64,000 nt of DNA from Trichoplax adhaerens (Eukaryota > Animalia > Placozoa). Location of the stretch: positions 8,316,066 to 8,380,065 of the forward strand of contig NW_002060943.1 of the NCBI RefSeq assembly GCF_000150275.1, in the 5' to 3' direction. The position numbers were made by a program, and so were the translations under genes. The notes beneath the pieces were generated by a model that saw only the letters and a list, made by a program, of their open reading frames with translations, made no database searches and was not told the origin of the DNA. This document shows positions 3,701-20,725 of this stretch, piece by piece; position 1 is the stretch's first letter, and each line of letters begins with the position of its first letter.

Positions 3701-5301
3701 AGTATTAATGCTAATGAACTGTAATCGTTTATTCAACCTTAGTATTATTGCTCGGTGATCCTGACTGTGAAAAATTAGATCTATACTCACAATTTGAAGG
3801 TGGTAACGTCCACACTGATTACGGTAGTACCGTTGGTGTAGACTTTACTTTCAGAAATATGCACATTGATGGTAAAATTGTTGAAGTACAAATTTGGTAT
3901 ATTAGTAAGTATCCCATATTATTTGCAGGATCATACTTGGCAGTATAAATATTGCTCATATAACAGCTTTCATTCCTGTAAAGTATCTTAATGTGGTATT
4001 AACTCTAATCGTAACAACTATAATAATTTATTTACTATATAATTATAGTGCAAATTAAATATATTTGCTACTGTTGTATGTAATTTATTATTAATAATAA
4101 TGATATTCTTTACAAAAAATTACAGCAAGTCAAAACAGATTTAGAGGACTTTATAGTTCGTAAGTATTAATAAGTAAACACTATCTATTACCCAATTTTT
4201 CATTTTCTAGAAAAAATAGTATGAAGCGTATCCTTAGCTTCTACTTTGAAGATATTACTATTGCGAAATTACGGTAGTACTAATTATTGTCTTTGCAATA
4301 TAGATATTATCGTAGTGCTGCAGGTGCATTATTGATTTATGATGTTACTAAACGGCACACTTTCCATAACGTCCGTAATTGGGTTCATGATATGATGGCA
4401 GATGCTGATGAAAATATCGTGACATTATTACTCGGTAACACCAGCACATGCAATAAAGATAATACTAGAGCGGTATCAGAGAAAGAAGCTAACAAATTCG
4501 CAGGTATTGCAAATTTTGGAATTAGTACCCTATAGTTATGATTACAGTTTAATTTTGATAGTGAACCATGATATAATCTGAATCAATTAATTACTACATT
4601 ATGAAATTTAACAGAAGGAAATGTTACATTCTTCTCTGAAATATCAATTTTGGATAACGTTGCGATTGAAAATTTATTCCGAAATTTTGTGTCAGGTACT
4701 TCTATAGCGTAATTATATAATAATTACGTCATTATTTATCGCGCTATTGCTTGCAAAAAACCCAATTACTAACACACAAGCACATCTACAATAAATATCC
4801 ATACAATTATTAGCTAGCGTAAATTACCATTGTACGACCAACAAAAAATTTACCAAATATTGTCACGGATTTCTAACAGTTTTTCTTTTAGTTACAAGTG
4901 GTATACTGTATTACCTTATTCCAATTTGCACTATTTTAGGTATCGTATGTTGGAAAGTATACGCATGATCAAGCTTCTTAATATTTCTATTGATGAGCGA
5001 AAACGTACTGTAGTTTAGTAATTTTTATAAGGATACAATTCGTAATATACGGTAGTTTCGAGTATGCAGTAACTTAGGGGAATTTCTTTGAAGAACGTGA
5101 TAGCACTTTCTTGAACAAAAATGAGATCTTTCGCTTAGATTTCTAATCCTTTTGATGAGAGAAGCTAAATCATGTTAAATAACGTATTTAGAAGCTTTCA
5201 GTATTTTGGCAGACAATCGCTTAAGTTATACTTACTCGAAACTAAATTGTTTTCCGATTTCAGAAATTTATAACCGAAGTCTGCTAAGCAAGAAAACTTA
5301 A
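706..5301 (+). CDS. Tandem double-domain Rab11-like pseudoGTPase (~364 aa); exons (706-742 tentative), 1621-1782, 2442-2475, 2615-2811, 2995-3075, 3254-3270, 3447-3498, 3743-3904, 4126-4159, 4304-4503, 4615-4695, 5264-5301
   Basis: All joins are GT-AG and phase-compatible. Rab11-type segments include STIGVDYAVKSVKIGFKLVKAQIWDT, YFRGATGVIFIFDVTKRHTYENIRDW, YYRSAAGALLIYDVTKRHTF, ADENIVTLLLGN, RAVSEKEANKFAE and EIYRKQ. The two domains have near-identical exon sizes (162/34/197/81 vs 162/34/200/81). The first exon is a guess. Confidence 0.75.
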
Positions 5302-7309
5302 ACTTAATTCACGGATTTTATACTCCTGCGTTACGATTACTATTGACTATTGTCAATTTAACTTATATCTTGCGTACAAATGTAGATTATGTCCAAATCA
5401 TCTGCTGATTAATTATTTATTTTCTAGTATAGACAATGTAAAAATATTAGCTGAATTATGCCTGAGCTACACAACGATTATGGAGACGTATTTTAAAATA
5501 TATAGATAGTACCGAATTTAAAATTAATGTAAGAGAAATGTTTATCATGGCACTTCTTTTAAATATCCTGGCAAATAAATAAATGATATAACTGAAGGTG
5601 ACCATGACTGCAAGAAACCTATCTTTAATCAATTAAGCAACAATTTTTAGTTTTTATGTTACGGTAGCTCTAATTTATTTTACTTATATTTGCGTCTCTT
5701 GCTAAATACCTTAGCTCATATCTTTACGGCAAAATAATATCCATGACTGCATTACCGGGCTTATATATTTTTCTTATATGTCATAAATGTGTATAACGTT
5801 AGCAAATTAAATTAATATCTAATTTTTCATGTGCCGAATTTTTTTGAGGTGCAATTGCCATCCCTATATTTAAGCATTTACTTCGTATATTGAAATAAAT
5901 GAACTTTTGTATTTCCATTTTATTATACAATAATAGCTGATTGCAATGTTTCAGCCGCAGAAACAATCTAACGATGGATGGCTGGCTACTCGTGAGTGTT
6001 ACGATAATCTAGACTACAGGTACTATATTGCAGCTGCGAACTCAGAAAATCAAAGTATAAGGTGAAAGATGATGCCTTTTATTTTTAAAAACGACTGAAG
6101 TGATCATTTGATTACGGAATAGATCCTGATAGCGTATTAAATCGCAACTTATTGCCTTCAAAGTCTAATTACATTATTAACCTAAATTTCTTTACCTATT
6201 TCATTCGATACCGGTATGATAATGCTGTAATCACCATTCGATGGTGAGAATTTTAAATGGTTGCTTAAGAGTTACTATTGTCTCGTATACCATAAATCCG
6301 ATATCAAGTTCTTAGTAAGCGATAGGAAAAGAGCAACATCAAGGCTTTGCAATGAATTAAGTTAATGTCTTGTTTCTGGATACAATGATGATGCGTAAAT
6401 TAGAAGGTTTATATTTCAGCATACATGCTGCAATCAGGTACTATGAGTTTAACTACAGTATGTAGGAGTCTATACAATGTGTTGGTGTAAATGATATTGG
6501 AGCATATAGTTGACGACATAATTATTGGTTTTTACTGTATGTTGGCAATAAGTTAATATTAAAATGTTTTGAAGTAAAGTCCTACTACTGCGATAGCTTC
6601 AGCTGTCCCTTGATAAACTCAGGATTACAAAATAAGAACACATAAATGAATTTATATTGCTTCTAAGCTTGAGACGAGATAATATATAATTTTAAGGAAA
6701 TCAATTCCAAAATAAATGGTACTTTGCAGTTATAGATGATAACAGAAGTAATAAAAAAAAAGTTTGAGATGTTATAAGAGCAAATCAATTGATCAATTGG
6801 CACAGATTGCAGAGTTTACTGTATGATGACAAAATTATCGTTCTATTATTGCTATTTCATGGTATTATTACAATCTGTAAAGTAGATGATAAATTATTTT
6901 TAGAAAAATGATAGGGCAATAGTTATATTCGTAATAAAGTAGTAAATGGATAGAACGCTTCCTTAGTATTTCTATAACTCGTTAATGGATTACAAATTCA
7001 CAAAAAAATAATGTCAAAAGTTCAGGAAATCGAAATGGTTAAACCAGTTTACATATGATAGTCAATAAACTGTAGTTATTTTATTGAAAGTATCAATACA
7101 TGATGTAGTAAACCGATTTTCTGATATAGCAAAATGAAATCATAATAAATTTCATATTTCAGATATTCGATATCTTTTAATCGATTAATTTAGTGATGCT
7201 TTAAAAGCTATATCATTATCATTATGAAATGACGCTGATTTAGCTTGCATGTCACATTGAATGATGTTAATTAATCTTGATGGTTACCAAATTAATTTGT
7301 GTAAGATCG

Positions 7310-10300
7310 TTACGAGTCTTGAAGTGGAGCCGTTAAGAAAGTCCAATCTTCTAATAATGACGTCGATGTAGCATGGGTTAAAAAGTGAAGTTTTAAACTC
7401 TCTTCTAGTGTAAAAACAGATCCAAAGCTAGAAACTTCAATGGAATCATCTAAGAAAGTACTAGTGGATTTTTCCACGAGATAACAAAGGAATTCTTGAC
7501 GCTTACAAATTAACCAATTAGTGACAGCATTCTGGGTTTTAGGTGGCTTATTATTGCTTTTCAACACTTCCGGTCCCCATAAAATAAATCCTAATAATCG
7601 TATCGCTCTTTCGATAGTTAAACGTTCTTCTGGTTTACGGTTTAAAAAAGCGAAAGCAATTCGTTCAATGGATTGAGACAGAGCAGAACGAATAGGTATT
7701 AGTGGTAAATCGCTAATGCGATAATCTTGCATAGCTAATTGAACAGTAGGATCTGCAAAGGGATTATCTAAATGTAACATTTCATAAATGATACATCCAG
7801 CGGCAAATTGATCACAATATTGATAATCCAGTTCAGTTGAAGTTTCATGAACATTAACAATTTCGGGCGGTAGATGTTCTGTATTGCCACCAATATTAGC
7901 TAACGCCGCATTGATGGAAATTTTGAACGGATTTTCAACACCAACTTGATGTAGTGAATAGCTAAAATTGGTTATGGATAACTCCACTGGCGCATAGAGA
8001 TCATCTTGACTTTTAACCAATAGCAAATTATCCAAGGATAAATCACGATGAACAACTTTTACACTATGCAGATATTGCAAGCCGTAACATAATTGCAATG
8101 CTAACATAACAACCGTAAATTCGTATTCTAATGGATGAACATCATGATATCTTACGCAATTATCAACATATTGCTTTACTGTGCAAATAGGCGAACAATC
8201 TAATAGAAGACATGATACTGGATTATTTAGATTGATATTAGTGGTTGAATTACGAACTAAGCTATGCATAGCTAGAGGTAATTTCTCTTTAAAATGTGCC
8301 ACCGTGGTACAGACATTGCGATGATACTGTAATGTTGTACTAACGCGTATATCATGTTTAATCAGGAGTTTTTCTGCAAAATTGGAGACATGATGTTGAT
8401 TCGGTTCGATCTATAAGAGTTGATTCAAATTCATTAGTATGAGAAAATATATCACAGTTCAATATATTATTAACAGGTTGCTTTACTGGATACTTCAAGA
8501 TACAAGTCATTATTACAACGAATTTAAGCTGTTTAAGTTAAACAAGTGGATTTTCAGCTAATATTCAATCTCTAGTGGCTTACCTTGACTGAACCCATAC
8601 ATTCACGATTAACACCGAGATTTTCTTGTCCACTAATTTTAACGCTAATATAGCAACCATGCGGTGTAATTAAGCAAGGTATACGATTATTAATGTCAGC
8701 AATCAATAATAAATCACTCCATTGAATCTTTTGATAGAAGTTGGTATTACGCTCGCTAGCTTTAACTATGGATGGCATAGCTGCTTTTTTCCATTTTTTA
8801 TTCAACTCCGTCATGGTCGCTAACTGCAATTGCGCTAGATAGGAGGTAGAATCTAAATTCGATTTTTGGAAAATTGTGAGCGGTAATGTTTCTGAAATAC
8901 TTTCCCGGGCATTGACATTATAGACCAATTCGGTAGGTACTGTGGGTGATAAAACTGATAGCACAGCATCTGAATCATTTGACTCTATCGCTTCTTCACC
9001 TGCGGCAGAGTAAACATTTTTATCCGTAAATGATAGTACTGTATAAGTCAATAAACTACATCTAGAGAAGATTATGGATAATTTGTTGGTATGTATAGTA
9101 TTACATTGAGTATAACTAGAACAAGTTAGGTACATATAATAATCTTGCTAACCTTGATCGTTAAGCATTGGTGTTAAAAGGCGAACTGGCTTGTTAAGGT
9201 TGGCAAAGAATGAAGTTTCTTTCTTGGTGGAAGCTCCTCCATCGATGAAACTCAAGACTACAAAATTTCTGTTAGCACTATTACGCCGACCTTCAGTAGG
9301 TTCACGTGATGGCTGTTTTTGCTTTTGTATAAACGGTTTTTTTGCCTCTTCTTTCACTTCTTCTTTGGTTTCGTCGCTATCTCCTGCTTGACTGGGTCGA
9401 CGTTTAGCGGAAATAGCTAGCTGTGGGCCCATAACTTTAGATCGGCGAGCGGTTCTTCTTTTCAGTCGTGATTTTATCGGCCTCTCGAAGTCGTACTTGT
9501 CGTTATCCTCCGTAATTATCTTTTGAATTTCTAACGGTTCTACATAATCATCATCGGGTATGATGCTGCTAGAACTCACTGTACTTTTTTTTTGCGATAT
9601 ATCTGCTACTTTACTCGAGGACAATATATTACTATTGCTTTTAATAGTAGAATTATCTGGGAGTTTGAACTGTTTGGATTGTGTGCCACTTGCCTTCCTA
9701 TTAGACGACGACGACGATTCTTTAGTCAAGGTAAGAAATTGTATATCATTACTTTTTTCATCTTGTAATGGCATACTGCTAGATTTTCGAAGTGGGTAAT
9801 AATCTTGAGATTCATCATTCGATAAGTTGCCAGTTGAATGAGAAAGTCCTTTAGCTGCATTTAACGTACTATCTGATCTACTATCAGAATCTTCATCTTC
9901 GCCTTCGTCAGTTTTGTTATCACTACTGTTATTGTGCTTAGCCCGACGTTTTTTAGCCCACTTCCACGGCGCTAACATACCAACAGACAATTTCTTATCT
10001 TTATTTTCTTCCGCGCTATCTACCTGGATTTGTAAGTTATTATTATTAGCTTGGCTATTATTTTGATCTTGTGATATCTGATCTTCGGAGTCGCTATTAG
10101 AAAAGGAATCTAGTCGAACATAGGGACGATTTGCAAATTCTTTGGATTCTGTTGGATCGCTATCCCGAGGTGGCACAGGTGGCAAAGGTCCTTGACGGGA
10201 AGGGGCAATTGTTTGGAAATTTTCTGTAGCTGATTCCGATACTGTAGACGATCCAACATGTAAGTGTTGACCTTGGACTGATTTCAAGATTTTCGCTGCA

Positions 10301-12385
10301 TTACCTTCGGCATTCTTAGGAATTTCAGGCAATTCTCGATTTGAAAATGATTTCGGTTTACCATCTTGAAAGGATCTTAAATCCGAAGTTGATCGTGATG
10401 TAGTGCTACTATTACTCAGGCGGTAAATACTGTCTCCCTTTGGAATTTCCGGCAATTTTCGATTATGTAATGCAACACCTTTCGCACTGTGATCATTGGA
10501 GTCTTCAGTGCGATTTCGATTTCGAGTAGGAATGCCAGTATCTAATAGATTATGAATCGTATTCCTATGTGGAGATGAAGTAGCGACACTTGCACTTCGG
10601 CTCTCTTTTGGAATTTGAGGAAGCTTCCGGTGGACCATAGTATGTGATATCTTTTCTGGTCTTGGGCGCGGTGTATGATAAGTACTTTCAATCGTTTTAG
10701 ATCTTTCCTTGAAAAAATCTTCTTCCTTTGGAAGTAAGCTATCACAACTCCGTATGCTATCCAAGGAACTAGAACTAGTTACACGAGGTCTAGAATTGAC
10801 GCTATCTACCTTAGCTGCAGATACCGCATCAGCTGTTGCGTTAGCTAGATTGGCTACTGCTGTTAAAACTGCAGCTATAAACGAGAATTGAAATAAATGA
10901 TTATGTAAATTTAAGAGAAAATATAAGTTTCCCGATTAATAATTATATTTATATGTGTATGCAACTATACATAAAATTATCGTGGCCAACCTTTATCATA
11001 AACAGGGTTGTCCTTATTTGTATCTAAAAATGGGGGAAAAAAATCAATATAGGTTAGAACCAGTACCATTAATATCGCTTTAGATTCGTTCCGTTGCCTA
11101 ATAAATTTTATTTTAATATTAACTTCAAGTTCTAGCATCTGTTTGCATACTTCAAGGTGAGCGAAGCAGCAAATATTTAACAAACTTTACATGCGCAAAT
11201 GTGAGAAATATTGGTCAGTGTAAAAGTTATACTGGAGGTTGTTGCTATAAACGAACATTTATAATTATAATTAGATCTACATTGAGATCCTACATAAAGT
11301 ATCATTTGAAATAAATATTAATAAGTGCTGTATAATATCTATTTCACCATAGTTTACAAGCATATACGTATCAGTTTGCTTAAGATCAAAATTATCCGGT
11401 CAAGGAACTTTTATTGACGGCAAGTACCAACAGGGTTGTGTTAAAAATGATAAAACAAGAGTACCATAAAATTATGACATTTTCGATGAGATTGCAACAC
11501 TTGGTAATTTTGGGCCACATGATAGGATGAAAAGTTTAAGATCTTTTTATTCTAACCGGAATGACATACAGTAATTGCTAGCGGATCTTTTATTAGAACA
11601 TTTTGCGACATTGAAAGATTTAAATTAAAATGAGTGTTTCACGATACTAAGATAAACTTTTTGATGGAGTATAGTCGCTTATACTAATTAAATTGAACCT
11701 TTAAAATTTTCTGAGTCCGATTAGGTATACAAATTTGTAGATTGATACCATATTATTTAGTGAAGTTGTTTATTACTTTTGTTCTAGTGTTGTATAACTA
11801 TACAAGTTAAAGTACGGTAAGCACATAACAATTTTGACGACTGTCATATAGTTTGGTCTAAATAAAAAAACCTTCAAATTGACAAATGTCAATTAGTAAA
11901 CTTATGATAAACAGTAGCAGAATATTTATCCGTCCTAGCATGCTAGATTAACGTACAAAATGTTAAAATGAAGTGATATAGCCGATTAACTAGATTGGAA
12001 AAGCTTAGCTTGCCTGACATCAGTAGTGACACATTCTATAAATAATATGCGCATTACTATATGGCGCTAATTTGATCGTGATACCAATTAACCTACTAAA
12101 TAACCATCAAACTATTTATGTATTATTATATTATGAATACTCCTACACCATATATTCTATACGAATATTGCTCTAATTTACCTTGTAAACCTGTTTTCAA
12201 CGATTCGGTAAGATTTGTTGTTTGATCGTTTTTTTCAGACATTCTATTTGTACTTCTAATCAAAGGTAGTTTTAATATTTGCTTTAGTTAGTGAACTTCA
12301 TAGCAGAAAGGAATATGAAAATAACTGAAAGTTTCGGATACCTAATAGCAGCAACGTCATCATAAATAGAGGAAGACTGACTCAT
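7310..12385 (-). CDS. PEAK1/PRAG1 (SgK269/SgK223, NKF3) family pseudokinase, ~1131 aa; exons 12385-12342, 12255-12182, 10874-9153, 9038-8584, 8410-7310
   Basis: Kinase fold with LQLCYGLQYLH..VVHRDLSLDNLLL, DFG replaced by NFS, DQFAAGCIIYEMLHLDNPF and LWGP. C-terminal helices NWLICKR...LEESLKLHFL resemble the PEAK SHED module. The long low-complexity N-terminus carries PxxP and YxxP motifs. Exon phases are consistent; the true 5' start is less certain. Confidence 0.85.
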
Positions 12386-13786
12386 CCTGTTTGATATGCT
12401 AGTTATTTCTAATGCAGCGTTTTTAAAATTATCAAAATAGTTCAAGCAAGATGAAAAAATGCGGGTAATTTAATAACACGTCCGCTGCAATAATTTTAGT
12501 ACTATAGTAATACTACCTAAAGTGTGGTACAGTTTCAGTAAAATATTGTAGATTAAAGGCTGGAATTAAATATGTAAAAATTCTGTCATGAAGATGATCA
12601 AATGGTTACTTTAAATAATACTATAGTATCGAGGGGAGAGACAGGGTTATGACGCTTCTCTTTATATGGAGAACGGTGCGAAATGCGTTTGTGTAAGTAA
12701 AATAAACAAACTTCGATTTAGACTATTATTGGACTTCGTATATCCAATGAATATTAATAATTCACGGCAAACGATTGCGTCGTATCAACAATATTGTTTC
12801 AGATAGATAGATTTCTAAAATTGAATATTTCCTATACATATACGTATAACCGCAATATACATATTTAGTATGATTACATGCAGTTCTAGCGAAGTACTCG
12901 TACGCATATAATATATGGCGTTATTGTAGTCATAATCCATTGGGTCGAGAATTACGTTTCTTCAATCGTCTTGTGTGCAAATTCTTTATAAAGTGCGAAC
13001 ATATAATGTAAGCTTCTAAACTCCCTTTTGTTATGATATTACATAATATTTTTTTTAATTTAGACCGATGATATCATCCTAGTAGATAAGCAAAAGTTAT
13101 AATGTCGTCTATCAGAATTTTATATCAACATTTGAATAGAAACCGGTATTCACTCTAAACTGCCATGGTCATTAAATTCATATAGAGTAGATGTAGTAAC
13201 ACCGTATAGTATACTATAGCTACTTAGCTTAAAGGGGGCATTATTAATAATATGAACCTGCACTTTGACCTCTCACTACAGGGAGAAACTAAGTCCAAGA
13301 ATTTTGCCTGCACCAGCATCGAACTAACGCATGCTATACTTATGGAATTTGATATTAAACATTAGCAAATTGAAGCACATTCGTGGATCTGCTTCAAGTC
13401 ATTATTTGAAATTTTAAGCATCTTTTAATCCTTTAGAAGCACTATCGCGTGCCAAATTAAACGATTTCACTAAAAAGACATCGCTCTCAATAACTTTGAT
13501 AATATTCAAGATTGAATTGATGCGAGTATTTCAGTAGCTTACTTGTTAGACATTAGACATCTATCAATAAAGCCTTAGTATCATACTCTTTATCAGAGTA
13601 ACCTGCTGAGTGCGAAGTGTCACCAGGTACACCATTTATAAATGTTCCTCGTATCGCACCGCCAGACACAAGCAAGTATATTTCGCTTTCGCAAAATTTC
13701 AACTTGACTATTATAGCGATATCATTGCATATCGCTATGTACATATACGAAAGTTTACTATTCATATTCGCAGTAAAAAGAGAAAC

Positions 13787-13792
13787 TTTATT
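13787..13792 (-). terminator. Candidate polyadenylation signal (AATAAA) of the antizyme gene
   Basis: tttatt on + strand, ~350 nt downstream of the antizyme stop on the minus strand; such hexamers are common in AT-rich DNA. Confidence 0.3.
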
Positions 13793-14137
13793 TACGCAAA
13801 TTACATGCTACGTGTAGTTGAATACGCACAGAGTAGAAAGAGTGGCAGCAAACATATTTTAATGAACAGTGTTACCAACATAACGTGAATAACATGGACG
13901 TAGATAAATGAATACTAATATCGACGAGTATGAAGGCATCTAAATAGCCCCAATATAGTTCATTAATTAATTACATACCAGTGTAACGTAAATCAAAATG
14001 TAATTGGATCGCAGAGATCCATGCCCAATTAAATCTACTTTAACTAACTACAGTAACGACTAAAATAGTGTAACAATCCCAACCCATGCAAAGGGTACCG
14101 AAATCGAACAGCATGGTGCTGTCCAGTATTCTTATTG

Positions 14138-15561
14138 TCAATCATCATCATCATCAAATTTCTCGATTTCAAGGCACATATATATAAATGACGGGTTACT
14201 GGGTGTGCCCATTCGTCCAGGGAGTACCACGTGGAATCCAACATACATGAATATCTTAATGAGCGTATCTGTTAAAAACAAAAAATGTTAAGGAATAGAA
14301 TACGCATATAACATAATTGGAATCTACGAAAGTCATTTATAAATTAACAAAGATTAAGTTAAATCCAACCAAAGATAAGCTATCAATAACAATTTCAGAG
14401 TATGTCTATTTCGCTGCGAGCAACAATACAGGTATCATCGCTTTATGAGACAGTATACAAGTTACAAACACCATCTTCAATTACCTCTATCTTCAGATTG
14501 TGACGGAAATACAACAAAAACATGTGAGCAATCCATTTCTTCGGCTTTATCGAGCACTGTTACTAACCTAGCAGAAGTAAATCATGATGTAAATATCATT
14601 ATGCGAACTTAAAACTGTCGTCATAGTAAACCAAAATCATTGTGTAGTCATTATATACTGTGGATTGTAGTGTCGAATCGGCTGAGTTTTTAGCTTAATT
14701 AAATGTGCCACATGATTAATCATTGCAAAGCAATTATAGTAATTTACCCATCTCGAGAAATATGCTGCGTTTTGTTGTTTTCATCCACCACTAGTAGATA
14801 GAGATCATCGCCAACCCTAAAACTTGGGAATTTGGCGATCGCCTTGCCCGTTACGCCATCAATGGTATCAAATCGATATAGTTCAGGATGGAAATTTATG
14901 TTATCGAGATCATCATTCTATAAGGATAAAAAAATTATGATTATAATATCGTGTGTGTAGTTGTATTAGCAGTTTCACACGGTACTCCTTTGATTACTTA
15001 CGTTAAACAGGCGCAACGGTAATATATTATCGTCTTCATCTTCATCATCCACTATCAGCTCATTGGCTTGACTACCATTTTCAGGATTATTGCATGAATT
15101 CCAGCTTGCGCCATTGACGTAAATTGAGATCACTGCAGGAGTTCCCCCTAAAAAAAAAGGAAGTCAAATTAAGGCCAAAAGCAATATTCTGCCGCGCCTT
15201 TGGCGTCAATAAATCGCTTCAATTTGCTGTACTGTACTTTCATCGAAGGCGGATTAAGTATTCACAAATCAGACAATAACAGTACTAAATGATGTCAACA
15301 ATTCAATCTTGTATATCCAAAATCTTTGGGGTAAAGGTTGAAGGTGGAATAGAAAATAATGGAGGCTAAAATAAAGGCGATCTATGACTATAAACATTTT
15401 GTAGCAATGACTAGGAATGGATAGAACCAACTCTTACGTATTGCTACACTAGCACTGCACACTCGTGTTTTGCAACTTGCTTCTTCATTCGGAAATGCGA
15501 AGTCAATTCATATGAAGATAAAGCGAAAAGTTTGCTTACGTATTTGCATGCAAACCATCAT
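14138..15561 (-). CDS. OAZ: Ornithine decarboxylase antizyme (ORF2 exons 15147-15002, 14917-14748, 14567-14485, 14268-14138; 5' end and frameshift site unresolved)
   Basis: The spliced translation is ...FRVGDDLYLLVVDENNKTQHISRDGLVTVLDKAEEMDCSHVFVVFPSQSEDRDTLIKIFMYVGFHVVLPGRMGTPSNPSFIYMCLEIEKFDDDDD*. This matches the antizyme core pattern (vertebrate [51 protein letters not shown]). All joins are GT-AG and in phase. Confidence 0.9.
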
Positions 15562-16072
15562 CTCCAATTTAATTGATCAATATCAAGGTATGCTCCCATC
15601 CATGAAGAAATGGATTCGATCAATTAGCTACCAAATAATTAACATGTTTAATAATAATAAAGACTCCGTATGCAACAATTACTAAACGACAATCCAATTT
15701 CACATCATTTTGATGGTTGAAAGCTGCGACTTTCCTGCAGAAAATTGTTCTCCAGTACAGTACTGTACTATACTGGAAACTTGTAATGAACAAAGACGTA
15801 CCGGTACGGTACCAGCCAAAAAATTCTTGACTGACGGCCTACGATATCACAATGAATACAGTACAGTACATTGTACAGTACACCGTACCGAAGCGACAAA
15901 GGCATTCCAGTTTATCAACAACACCACTAAGAAGCATAAAATTGGGGTTTTTATCCTTGTTTTTTATTTTACTTTCTTCTTTACCGTACTACAGTAGTTA
16001 GGCTATGGTTGGCTACATTGTTGTCAATGCTTACAGTAATGTGGTCGCTTCGTACGACCTCCTTTGATGTTT

Positions 16073-16088
16073 TCTCGCGAAATGGCGG
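16073..16088 (-). promoter_or_regulatory. Adjacent YY1-like (CCGCCATTT) and CGCG-element-like (TCGCGAGA) motifs in the putative first exon of antizyme
   Basis: Minus strand reads CCGCCATTTCGCGAGA ~100 nt downstream of the inferred TSS; motif resemblance only. Confidence 0.35.
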
Positions 16089-16184
16089 AAAAAAATTCTC
16101 AAACAAGAGAAAAAAAGAGAAATACAGAGAAATTGATCCTTGGACGAAAAGCGTTTCGAGCCAGCGGACGTGATATCTGAGGAA

Positions 16185-16219
16185 ACAATGAAGAGTCGTC
16201 AGAATCTTTACTATTTATA
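16185..16219 (-). promoter_or_regulatory. TATA box plus initiator for the antizyme gene (TSS ~16189)
   Basis: Minus strand TATAAATA starts at 16219 and an Inr-like TCATTGT has its A at 16189, 30 nt later. An AUG-free stretch follows and ends at a strong donor (ACT|GTAAGC, 16035). Confidence 0.55.
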
Positions 16220-16704
16220 CAGTTCTATACTGTACAGTACACAGTGCAATAACGATACATGCACTGTAGGCCACTGCACTCAGTGACGAAATGTGCAAAA
16301 TAAGCTGTCATCTTCTCAGTCCTTTCTTCTGTAATAATCCATAGAAAAGTGGCAAATATGAGCTACCATGCAATGACAATTTATTTGTGCCGTTGTGCAC
16401 CCTACGTTACAGTACAGTACAGTACAGTATTGCCCATTCTACAGTACAACTGCAGCGCTCCGTACTGTACGGTACGGTACAATACGACGTACGGCGGTAC
16501 TGGACTACTGTATAAGTCTGTATTATTAATTAATTTATATCTGCGTCATGATGAAAAAAAGGGAAAAAAGCCAAGATGACCCAGCAAACCTGCAGTACTA
16601 GGAAGTTGCCTGTGTGCATTGCACAGTACAGTGTACGTTATCAAAGATAAAGCAAAGAAAAAGCGCGAGTGAAGAGGAAAACTTTTACGGGAAAATAGCT
16701 ATGC

Positions 16705-16786
16705 AAAACCAGTGTTGTATCACCGCTGATATTGCATGATGCAACACTGGTTTTTCTTATTGTTGAGCGGGTTGGAACCAGTGTTG
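16705..16786. repeat. Triplicated AACCAGTGTTG motif (forward, inverted, forward)
   Basis: 16705-16722 aaaaccagtgttgtatca pairs with 16737-16754 tgatgcaacactggtttt (17/18); third copy at 16776-16786. Confidence 0.85.
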
Positions 16787-17299
16787 TCAGCACTTTATTT
16801 TTGACCATCGAGTTCAAATTTACTTCCACGGTTTTTGACTCACCCTCAGTAGTGTACTGTACTCAGTACTGTACTAGTACTGCTGAAACACTGTACTGTA
16901 CAGTACTCCGCAAGTACTTTACAGTACAATGTACTGTAAAGTACCAAGCGATTTTGATGAAATTGATTGAAGGTTATCTCTATCTGTAGATTATGGACTA
17001 CTGGAACGGACTGGACCGAAGGACAGGACTCGTGGTTGTCCTGGACCAGATTCAGTCGGTGCGTGTTTGTGTAGTACACTAGATGACTAGCTCCAGTATG
17101 ACGATAAAACCCCCCCCCCCCAATCGAGACACATTTTCCATACAAAGTCATATAAAATACGTACTGTATGTCCAAATTTTCCGCCCTCCCCTTTACTATA
17201 CACATTGACTGTGTTGATTACGAGTCGAGCTTGACCTGTAGCCCATGACGAGTGAACAGTGACTGACCATTTCAATACGTACTCAAGCTAGTCTACGGC

Positions 17300-18877
17300 A
17301 TGTCGGCGCTGAATTTATCTCGACATATTGGTAGGGTAATTCCACGTATAAGCCAACAAATAGCTAGAAATGGCCTACGTATGGTTAGTACGACAGTTCC
17401 TCACTACGCAATTTATGATGTAAATGCTGAAGAAGATTTTAATGACAAGGTATTCCAATGTAATAAGCCCGTTGTTGTGGACTTCCATGCCAGGTAACTT
17501 TGCTACCTTTTTACTATCATTCATTTGCGAGGTGCATAGACCGCATTTCAAACGAATACAGTAGTTATAGCACTTCAGGCAAATTGTCAAATACAGTATT
17601 ACATCAACAAGCGGATTCAATTTCAGAGATGTGAATAAATGGATAATTGTGTTGGAATCAGTAAAGCGTTCACTGTAAAATTGTCTATAGTTAGTCGCTT
17701 TAGTGACGTGCAAGCGTTTGCCATTAATTAAAGTTTGTTAATGGTATGTCGCTAACTACTGGCGGTTTAAGGATATGCATGTTCAAGAATTATAATAGAA
17801 CCGGTTGTATAGTCAAAATGGACGCGACTACAATCCTAGATGCTATTTTCAGATTGAATCTTTGGTTGTCCAGTGTATTTAATTATAATTAGTAAACTGA
17901 CTTAAGTATTTGCATGTTCAATAAATATTGATAAAATCAAAATGTACTCTGCAGCGATCATCGATGCAATTTTCAGGTTAAATCTTCAGTAGTGCAGGAT
18001 ACGCGTACTTATTCGTTCATTATCATATTTATAATCATAAATGAACTAATCTATCAGTATCATACTAAGAATAGTTATACTATATATAATACTCTAACTT
18101 CAGATACTTGAAATTGAATCTTTATGATTTTACAAACTCACGATTATGGTTATGCAGACCAATCTATTCTTATGTTGTATAATGTACTTACATGTAAATT
18201 AACTTATGTTTAAACATCATCTATTCCAGTTGGTGCGGACCTTGCAAGGTACTTGGTCCTCTACTGAAGAAATTTATTGATGAATCAAAGGAAAAAGTAG
18301 ACTTGATCAAGGTTGATATTGATGAAGCCCCGGATATTGCCTTAGAACATGAGGTAATGTACAGTATCTTGTTATGTAAGATAAAAAAGCATTATTACGA
18401 GTATTCTAACAAGAAATACCATTTTGCACGGAAATATCTGACGAATGAAATAAAATCCAATAATAGAGGAATAATGTACATTTACTAGTTGATTGGAATC
18501 TTGTTCGTGCATATAAAACATGATGAATATGATTTATTTCCACTTACTGAATATGGCACAAACTTTGACCATAATACCGCACACAGTACACATCTGCGAG
18601 GCAGCAATATCGATTAAAAATTAAGCCTGTATAGCATGTAATAATGATGTGCATTCAAAGTTGTTAAGTAACTGTAAACTTTGAGAAAATTTTCTTCTAG
18701 TGGGGTATAGATATCCTATAAAGGAAGTACATTGATTACAATGTCGTTGCATTAAATTTTTAGGTGTCAGCTGTGCCGACCCTCTTGTTTATTCAAAATG
18801 GAAAAATTGTAGACAGATCAGTAGGGCTAGTTCCTGAGAATGACCTAAAGACGAAAATTACGGAACTATCTGCCTAA
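17300..18877 (+). CDS. TXN2: Mitochondrial thioredoxin (143 aa); exons 17300-17493, 18230-18353, 18764-18877
   Basis: Arg-rich, acid-free N-terminal presequence; [20 protein letters not shown] active site; KVDIDE; EVSAVPTLLF cis-Pro motif; in-phase GT-AG introns; AATAAA overlaps the stop. Confidence 0.93.
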
Positions 18878-20725
18878 TAAAGTGTTTTCATGACCATCAC
18901 CGGATCGTATCAAATTGCTAAACTCTGGATTGTTCTAAATCATTTAAATGCTGAAAAGTAACATTTTATTTACTTGGTTATAATCGGGTATATAGGCTAC
19001 TTGTATACGGTAGATATTGTAAGTCAGAAAAAGACTAAGTTTTGAGGAATTTCATATAATGACTTATTACAAGGTCTCACTTGATGTTTGGAGTCTATAA
19101 ACTTGGTAAATGAAAGAATATTTGAATATGATTTTAACAATTTGATATACTATTTGCACTATCTATCCAAGAAATCTAACATTTAACTTGAGCTTGCTTC
19201 CTTATTTACAAAAAATGACAGTCTTACGGAAGTTACGAACTTTCGCTTGGGATACTTTGCATAGAATAACTTTATCACGCAGAATCTGATTTTATAATTC
19301 CTCATTAAAATCAACTGTTAGCTGCAGATTAAAAATTGATTACGATCTGTTAAATATAATGAACAGGATAGTCCTATAAGTAATCGTCATTCAACGTTGG
19401 ACTATGCCGTAAACGACTTTTAAAATAAATTATACTATTCTTGAAAGGTATTGAAATAAGCTCAGTATTAGGCTGACTGATTGTTTCCAGCGGTTAACTC
19501 TATAGCGACTGTACTTAGAATCGTAGTATGCATTACACATGCATTATGTACATGCTGCATGATGTCTGTTTAACTACTTGCTCCCAATGGTTCATTTTTC
19601 AACGATTGTACTTGGAAATGCAGTACATATTTCATGCCTAATGTGCATATGCTGCATAAAATGTATTTCATTATTAATTTACCAGTATTATGTGTTCGAG
19701 TAGTGAGGCATGCCTATCTATAACTATTTAAGCCTACTTCGTAGTAATACACTCGATCTGTGAAATTAAAATTATTACATGCTTTGTGTTACCAGCGTGC
19801 AATCCTATCAGTATACAGCAGACATCAAAAAACTACTAGTGAAATACATCAAACTGCCACATATTTTGTCGTTAACATTTGTATTAGACGTAGTAAAATA
19901 GCTTAAAGCAAAACGAAATTTATTTTATTAGATTGCAATATTGTATAGAATGCATAAAAAGTTTTTCAGATCTTAGCGCAATTTCTGACAGTTATCAATA
20001 AAACGATAATTTATTGCAAGTTTGGTAGGATTGTAAAATGATTTTTAATAATAGTTGATTCATACTAATTGAATGTCAGCAAGTATTTTTATCGATCTTG
20101 TCCCGTTGTGCGAGGTTTATTATAACCTCCATTTATCACATTTTCTTGTTATCCATTAATGCACAGGTAAATACTTTTATACCCAGATAATATAATTAGA
20201 TTATCTACCCTAGAGTATCAGGAGTATTCGGCATATTAAGTTAAAATTACACTCGAGTATGAATTTAAACTCATCGAGCGAAGTCGATGAGTAGATGATG
20301 TTGCTGCACGTTTAGTTTCACTGTTGATATATTTAGGGTTTATACTATACAATACTCATATAGGATACGTGTCGTAGTAGCCTTATAAAAACTACAAGGT
20401 TTGTATTAACAGTAAGATTACGTTAATATTGTATGTTGACAAAACGCTAATTAAATTTATAATAGCTATTAATCATCACCAAGGCAACCGATCTAACTTT
20501 CATTGTTTACTGGATAGAAAGCAGTTATTAGGAATAACATACTAATATTAGTCAGATTATTAGCTGAAGTATGGTAACCTACCACGATTATGTATTATAT
20601 GCTGTTAGCGATAGAGTTGTAGAGTAAGCTCTTTTTTTGCACGTTACTCAACCATTATTGTTAGCCCGGTCGTGTAAATTGAAGACCATACAAGTAACTA
20701 GTAAAAGGTTAAAGTGGTTGCAAAT

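Follow-up and report, generated by a model that had tools for sequence, protein, structure and literature searches.

The +1 frameshift of ornithine decarboxylase antizyme is a textbook case of conserved regulatory recoding, and a 2007 survey that spanned approximately 300 genes concluded that every animal and fungal antizyme then known requires a +1 shift at the stop codon of ORF1 (PMC1874602). Known ORF1s range in length between 17 codons, in Hydra, and 86 codons, and the exceptions to this scheme are Tetrahymena, the antizyme of which lacks an ORF1, and Capsaspora, which has a 6-codon upstream ORF and no simple +1 solution (PMC1874602). In addition, the second codon before the shift codon is a strongly conserved UGG (PMC5009743). 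The antizyme gene of Trichoplax adhaerens described herein resembles the canonical metazoan antizyme in that, in the dominant mRNA, ORF2 does not possess its own start codon, and in that a UCC-UGA is present in a +1-compatible frame and at a similar distance from the conserved domain. It differs from the canonical form in a UAA located one codon before UCC-UGA, which keeps any AUG-started ORF1 from reaching this hexamer, and in the absence of the UGG two codons 5', the Rfam antizyme element, and the 3' structure. An animal antizyme that is unable to use its UCC-UGA is a recoding puzzle undescribed in the literature searched. All coordinates below refer to the window, namely, the whole stretch of 64,000 nucleotides that was analysed, and the features of the gene are on its minus strand.

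The minus-strand locus between 16189 and 13767 is the ornithine decarboxylase antizyme gene of T. adhaerens, and is single-copy and well expressed. Its stop-free antizyme-coding pieces lie, in translation, at 15145-15002, 14917-14750, 14566-14486, and 14266-14141, and the database protein XP_002108842.1 matched the Pfam family PF02100 (ODC_AZ) over residues 97-173 with a score of 41.9 bits (E 1.1e-10), the curated cut-off being 24.2 bits. This protein also resembled the solved rat/human AZ1 chains 1zo0_A (E 2.7e-9) and 5bwa_B (E 4.1e-9), and further matched the solved antizyme chains 4zgz_B and 4zgy_B. The ODC_AZ model gave no match in a six-frame search of the Trichoplax genome because the individual exons are too weak; exons 4 and 5, each searched singly, yielded weak ODC_AZ matches, and the antizyme locus was the sole match in the genome to a protein query made from exon 5. 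Taken together with the transcripts described below, the ODC_AZ score, the AZ1 structure matches, and the one genomic locus demonstrate that the gene is real and single-copy. In possessing an ODC_AZ domain and in being a single gene, as in most invertebrates, it is similar to rat/human AZ1 and Hydra. Nor is it a pseudogene in decay, given the intact ORF2, an mRNA that is both abundant and completely spliced, and the low divergence between H1 and H2: one difference falls in the approximately 530 nt of coding sequence (Asp to Ala at 15030) and one in the 213-nt leader that precedes the site. By comparison, the variant sites pooled from H2 and the sequencing runs described below have a spacing of ~31-34 nt within intron 1 and of ~53 nt within the 3' UTR.

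Regarding its status in databases, the gene was presented as hidden in the preliminary description of this stretch; it is already annotated, both as XP_002108842.1 (UniRef B3RM60), a protein of 182 residues with the UniRef name "Ornithine decarboxylase antizyme", and as RDD46588.1 of Trichoplax sp. H2, which is named "Ornithine decarboxylase antizyme 1" and shares a cluster with XP_002108842.1. The exons were searched one by one, and the whole-protein searches used the public XP_002108842.1 rather than the RNA-supported spliced model. Exon 3 is identical (100%) to the matching part of XP_002108842.1, which was its single true match in a HMMER scan of 1.84 billion representative proteins, the rest being unrelated repeat proteins; no relatives of exon 3 were found in a set of 5.8 billion proteins. 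With XP_002108842.1 as the query, only its own cluster was recovered (T. adhaerens and Trichoplax sp. H2), and a metagenome scan returned 596 pattern hits, none of which was a relative. The matches from the protein sets and metagenomes included no antizyme of Hoilungia or another distant placozoan, and the antizyme loci compared in the present study are those of T. adhaerens and Trichoplax sp. H2 only. A literature search for a placozoan antizyme or B3RM60 found no paper.

The structure of the transcript was obtained by aligning the assembled contigs of four public runs (X1, X4, X5, and X11) to 13500-17000 (3,501 letters). X1 covered the introns with zero splice joints and is therefore DNA-like, and X4, X5, and X11, which derive from three separate studies, behaved as RNA. 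The joints common to these three runs are 16035|15147, 15002|14917, 14748|14567, and 14485|14268, and the dominant mRNA is approximately 1,056 nt in length and has five exons. Exon 1 (16189-16035), the 5' end of which is approximate, is a 5' leader and is devoid of ATG in all three frames; RNA depth drops from hundreds to 0-10 above ~16190, and the apparent start of the transcript is preceded, at a distance of ~30 nt, by a TATAAATA box (16212-16219). Intron 1 (16034-15148, 887 nt, GT..AG) is retained at approximately 2-8% of exon depth, with its unspliced contigs showing a depth of 18-79 versus 600-1100 for the exons. The only junction into 15147 in the three RNA data sets is that from 16035, at a depth of 595-872. 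Exon 2 (15147-15002) contains all of the leader AUGs and the start of the ORF2 frame (codons from 15145), and exon 3 (14917-14748) lies between the junctions 15002|14917 and 14748|14567. Exon 4 (14567-14485) encodes the core of the ODC_AZ domain, and exon 5 (14268-13767) carries the end of this domain, the stop codon TGA (14140-14138), and a 371-nt 3' UTR, in which AATAAA (13792-13787) is positioned 20 nt before poly(A) addition. The poly(A) tail is added after 13767, where a contig of X11 finishes in a run of T. Contig-based evidence of this type does not capture low-frequency junctions, precise 5' termini, or translation. The contigs of exons 1-2 were 4-5-fold deeper than the exon 3-5 contig in X4 and X5 (~950-1100 versus 190-290), and the two depths were equal in X11; the imbalance in X4 and X5 could be due to library bias or early-ending transcripts.

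The sequence ATG-CAA-TAA-TCC-TGA is found in exon 2 (15095-15081), and an in-frame TAA directly before TCC-TGA had been noted in the preliminary description. This TAA (15089-15087) is genuine in the DNA-like run, the three RNA runs, and H2. When the runs were checked at this position for an assembly error, no alternative letter was observed in X1, X4, X5, or X11, the contigs over the position having a depth of 68-946 and ends well away from it, and the independent assembly of Trichoplax sp. H2 is identical over 15031-15158. On the RNA-supported mRNA, no AUG-started ORF1 ends at UCC-UGA(-A) (15086-15081), which is in a +1-compatible frame and separated from any start by the UAA; the earlier claim that the gene has no usable canonical site was thus confirmed, and antizyme expression must therefore be atypical for an animal, as had been concluded. 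The RNA contigs revealed neither a cDNA structure nor a base change that restores an ordinary ORF1 up to UCC-UGA.

The reading frames of this mRNA limit the ways in which ORF2 may be reached. Between the UGA at 16101-16099 and exon 4, ATG codons are absent from the ORF2 frame. AUG 15114, which is the first in the mRNA, begins a 19-codon ORF, MAQAGIHAIILKMVVKPMS (15114-15055), which ends in AGC-UGA-U. Since ORF2 is at -1/+2 relative to the frame of AUG 15114, a +1 shift there is unproductive, and it leads to a stop after three codons; no -1 slippery heptamer was found in this ORF. The exon 2 ATGs in the -1/+2 frame are 15114, 15078, 15063, 15048, 15045, and 15039. AUG 15095 is the only exon 2 AUG in the +1-compatible frame, in which CAA and then UAA follow, and a single +1 shift leads into ORF2 from one AUG-started frame only, AUG-CAA-UAA (15095-15087). 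As in Capsaspora owczarzaki, there is a very short upstream ORF, from which a simple +1 shift cannot explain ORF2; unlike this protist, Trichoplax is an animal, and its mRNA also retains a UCC-UGA hexamer. The antizyme mRNA of Trichoplax must use a shift after a two-codon ORF1, initiation at a non-AUG codon, double recoding, or a rare isoform, and this species would represent the first animal exception to canonical antizyme frameshifting.

The distance between UCC-UGA and the ODC_AZ domain appears to fit that of an ancestral shift site. UCC-UGA is ~58 residues upstream of the domain alignment point, and the corresponding distance in human AZ1 is ~63 residues when 5bwa_B (160 residues) is taken to correspond to human AZ1 residues 69-228 and, accordingly, to begin at the human shift site. 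TCCTGA occurred in that frame of exon 2 in 0.8% of mononucleotide shuffles (0.008). Contrary to the view that this TCC-TGA is the only one in the correct frame, a second was identified in exon 3 (14888-14883, minus strand), which arises from CCT-GAA (Pro-Glu), exactly as does the copy at 15086; therefore, a chance origin of the 15086 site is harder to exclude. A TCCTG(C) (15140-15136, minus strand), i.e., UCC-UGC at 15140, is also present in the same frame as UCC-UGA 15086, possibly by chance. Regarding the elements that accompany known shift sites, a search for the Rfam antizyme element in 13700-16300 gave no match at E values up to 10, and the 99 nt from 15100, which were assessed for a 3' stimulatory pseudoknot or stem-loop (an element that antizymes do not universally possess), folded no better than shuffles (z +1.4). 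At neither candidate site does a UGG occupy the expected position two codons upstream, the nearest UGG in the +1-compatible frame (15113) being 7 codons before CAA and 9 before UCC. The RNA fold of exon 1 (z -2.2) is not decisive.

If the rule of an AUG start and one +1 shift at a stop codon is kept, these frames leave a single solution, AUG 15095/CAA-UAA-U. We tentatively favor this reading, to which we assign a probability of roughly 35%: antizyme may be produced by a +1 shift at CAA-UAA-U after a two-codon ORF1 starting at AUG 15095. Some of the scanning ribosomes would bypass the weak first AUG 15114 and initiate at AUG 15095, decode CAA, reach UAA (15089-15087), and shift +1 on CAA-UAA-U into AAU-CCU-GAA. 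The predicted product has ~158 residues with the N-terminus Met-Gln-Asn-Pro-Glu, and the UCC-UGA three bases downstream would be an ancestral relic or a coincidence. UAA and UAG were nearly as effective as UGA in mammalian shift tests, and the stop codon at the shift site is other than UGA in seven natural antizyme cases (PMC1874602). Several features argue against this reading. The context of AUG 15095 is poor (U at -3, C at +4), and this AUG sits within the ORF opened by AUG 15114. Moreover, an ORF1 of two codons compares with a shortest known length of 17 (Hydra), CAA would be a new P-site codon, and the UGG module, the Rfam antizyme element, and a stable 3' structure are all missing. A chance ATG in that frame of exon 2 is also not unlikely. 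The Trichoplax antizyme would offer a compact natural test of the minimal ribosomal needs for polyamine sensing.

Among the alternatives, the one that survives best, which we nevertheless consider to be unlikely, dispenses with frameshifting: ribosomes would begin translation of the ORF2 frame at a near-cognate codon that precedes all AUGs, and read straight along the dominant mRNA. The candidate codons are AUU 16083, which is in a GCC-AUU context, AUC at ~16071, and GUG 15133. Upstream of 15088, 41 codons of the ORF2 frame are free of stops, the first one encountered being the UGA at 16101-16099; however, this openness is not significant, as exon 1 contains one stop codon over its three frames, and neither homology nor a codon-level coding signal was found upstream of 15088. 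The UAA beside UCC-UGA would be the expected decay of an unread frame, and the frame of UCC-UGA has three stops within five codons; the leader is also as invariant among strains as the coding sequence. On the other hand, near-cognate starts are weak and have no evident link to polyamines. Starts of this type were proposed for antizyme 3 by Ivanov and Atkins (PMC1874602), and antizymes that are frameshift-free or unexplained exist in Tetrahymena and Capsaspora, but no frameshift-free animal antizyme is known. Tetrahymena thermophila, with no ORF1 and no frameshift, provides a precedent, although in the dominant mRNA of Trichoplax, ORF2 is not provided with its own AUG. The gene also recalls mammalian antizyme 3, which has a proposed CUG start and GN-UCC-UGC pseudo-sites, in its UCC-UGC at 15140 and in the plausibility of a non-AUG start; CUG 15104 is flanked by A at -3 and G at +4. 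In contrast to these similarities, mammalian antizyme 3 and the Trichoplax gene are not orthologous.

A more doubtful alternative is a rare productive isoform, in which an AUG exon ending at 15540 is spliced to 15147 and translation starts at AUG 15561/15558 behind several uORFs. On this view, no antizyme would be made from the abundant mRNA that joins exon 1 to exon 2. The candidate start exon (15627-15540) lies within intron 1 and is also the start exon of XP_002108842.1 and RDD46588.1. The preliminary description had correctly reported its sequence features, which are a 13-codon uORF, MGAYLDIDQLNWR, from 15599, the TGA of which overlaps ATG-ATG at 15561/15558, and AGA-TGA-T (15563-15557), and the exon is followed by a GTAAG donor at 15539; its assignment of 15599-15540 to an exon did not hold, since the RNA places this stretch in intron 1. 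The proposed start at ATG-ATG with splicing from 15540 to 15147, which is the same as both public gene models, had no supporting junction in the three RNA data sets. A check of the exons between 16189 and 15147 with RNA contigs yielded 16035|15147 alone, with the intervening stretch unspliced. Each of the four bins over 15255-15722 had the depth of exactly one unspliced contig, at 79.2 (X4), 18.3 (X5), and 26.7 (X11), and this contig is continuous over 15540, 15475, and 15438, covering the whole intron (15118-16063) in X5. A junction contig would have added depth and a joint, as does the 59-nt exon 1-exon 2 contig; therefore, there is none at 15540, 15475, or 15438. In X11, eight records were placed, two of which had non-fitting parts (at 13767 and 16944), and no foreign contig ends fell within the gene, which leaves no room for an alternative junction contig. 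Relative to the 16035|15147 junction, we estimate the share of an isoform using the candidate exon at no more than a few per cent; contig assembly may lose rare branches, and its absence is not thereby proven.

Features of the stretch itself speak for such an isoform. The context of AUG 15558 is optimal (A at -3, G at +4), with the uORF stop overlapping it, and good splice-like signals surround the stretch: a 195-nt cassette (15734-15540) with four small uORFs would be delimited by the GTAAG donor (15539) and, at its other end, by an AG (15736-15735) resembling a strong acceptor, and the AUG exon might correspond to this cassette. The exon was also chosen by two annotation pipelines. Within intron 1, 15520-15759 (241 nt) has zero variants in the five genomes/runs, with 20 variant sites elsewhere in the 887-nt intron. 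The probability of this longest variant gap is ~0.04 by a rough estimate. The RNA fold of the intronic block (z -1.0 against shuffles) is not decisive. The choice of the exon by the annotation pipelines is weakened by their use of different ATGs of one mini-exon, with XP_002108842.1 opening MVCMQIR... and RDD46588.1 opening MMVCMQIR..., which is typical of ab initio fixes.

Both public models begin in this ATG mini-exon of 19 or 22 nt (15561-15540, minus strand), which lacks junction support in the three RNA sets, and they look like an annotation fix that edits a frameshift problem away. The same type of fix was described in the Cryptococcus antizyme by Ivanov and Atkins (PMC1874602). As in the misannotation of Cryptococcus neoformans, the models erase recoding through splice sites or exons lacking transcript support; unlike in C. 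neoformans, an ATG mini-exon from intron 1 is added and the shift site is not trimmed.

We regard as improbable the broader proposal that antizyme control in placozoans has moved off frameshifting, either to the inclusion of an intron 1 cassette or, more broadly, to no frameshift at all. With cassette control, antizyme may be made only upon inclusion of the uORF-laden stretch at ~15734-15540, for example in response to polyamines. If true, a cassette or another frameshift-free route would make this the first animal antizyme without frameshift-based polyamine sensing.

Very little probability is attached to double recoding, in which translation starting at AUG 15095 would read through the UAA and then undergo the canonical +1 shift at UCC-UGA-A. 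The frame of UCC-UGA is right for this route and its distance from the domain is about right. A CAA directly 5' of a stop codon promotes readthrough in some systems, and polyamines have been reported to increase readthrough; however, UAA is the tightest stop codon, and UCC is not among the known 3' contexts for readthrough. The multiplication of two inefficient events would result in a very small yield, and, as demonstrated by the TCCTGA of exon 3, CCT-GAA coding is able to generate this hexamer. The weakest candidate, a second model in the preliminary description with a +1 shift at AGA-UGA-U (15563-15557), a 64-nt intron, and an extra exon at 15475-15438, is next to negligible, since the entire stretch is intronic in the RNA data with no junction at 15540, at 15475/15476, or at 15438, and the acceptor is weak, even though a UGG adjoins the putative shift codon, U follows the UGA, and the frame arithmetic is consistent. 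The remaining weight beyond the shift at CAA-UAA-U and these alternatives falls on something else.

Several observations were made on the neighbourhood of the gene and on the genome. A thioredoxin-domain gene is positioned head-to-head with the antizyme gene (H2 638-2213; window ~17300-18900), and the gene for a 1,129-residue protein with a protein-kinase domain, which has a long Ser-rich exon, is located downstream (H2 7186-9433; window ~5000-11000). Short repeats of the TACAG/GTACT type are present near the gene at 15857-15888, 16408-16429, and 16845-16927; they give rise to dozens of chimeric joints and loose ends in X1, and appear to be a microsatellite motif dispersed throughout the genome. 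Matches to Orn_Arg_deC_N, the domain of ODC-type decarboxylases, were found at 19 places in the T. adhaerens genome, with a best E value of 3e-48; the genome thus also encodes the type of enzyme that antizyme targets, in keeping with the identity of the gene. The two best of these (C1405:1988252-1988971 and C701:141-863) are in long open frames of 404 and 326 aa, and, unlike the other matches, which are exon-sized, may represent intronless genes or be of bacterial origin.
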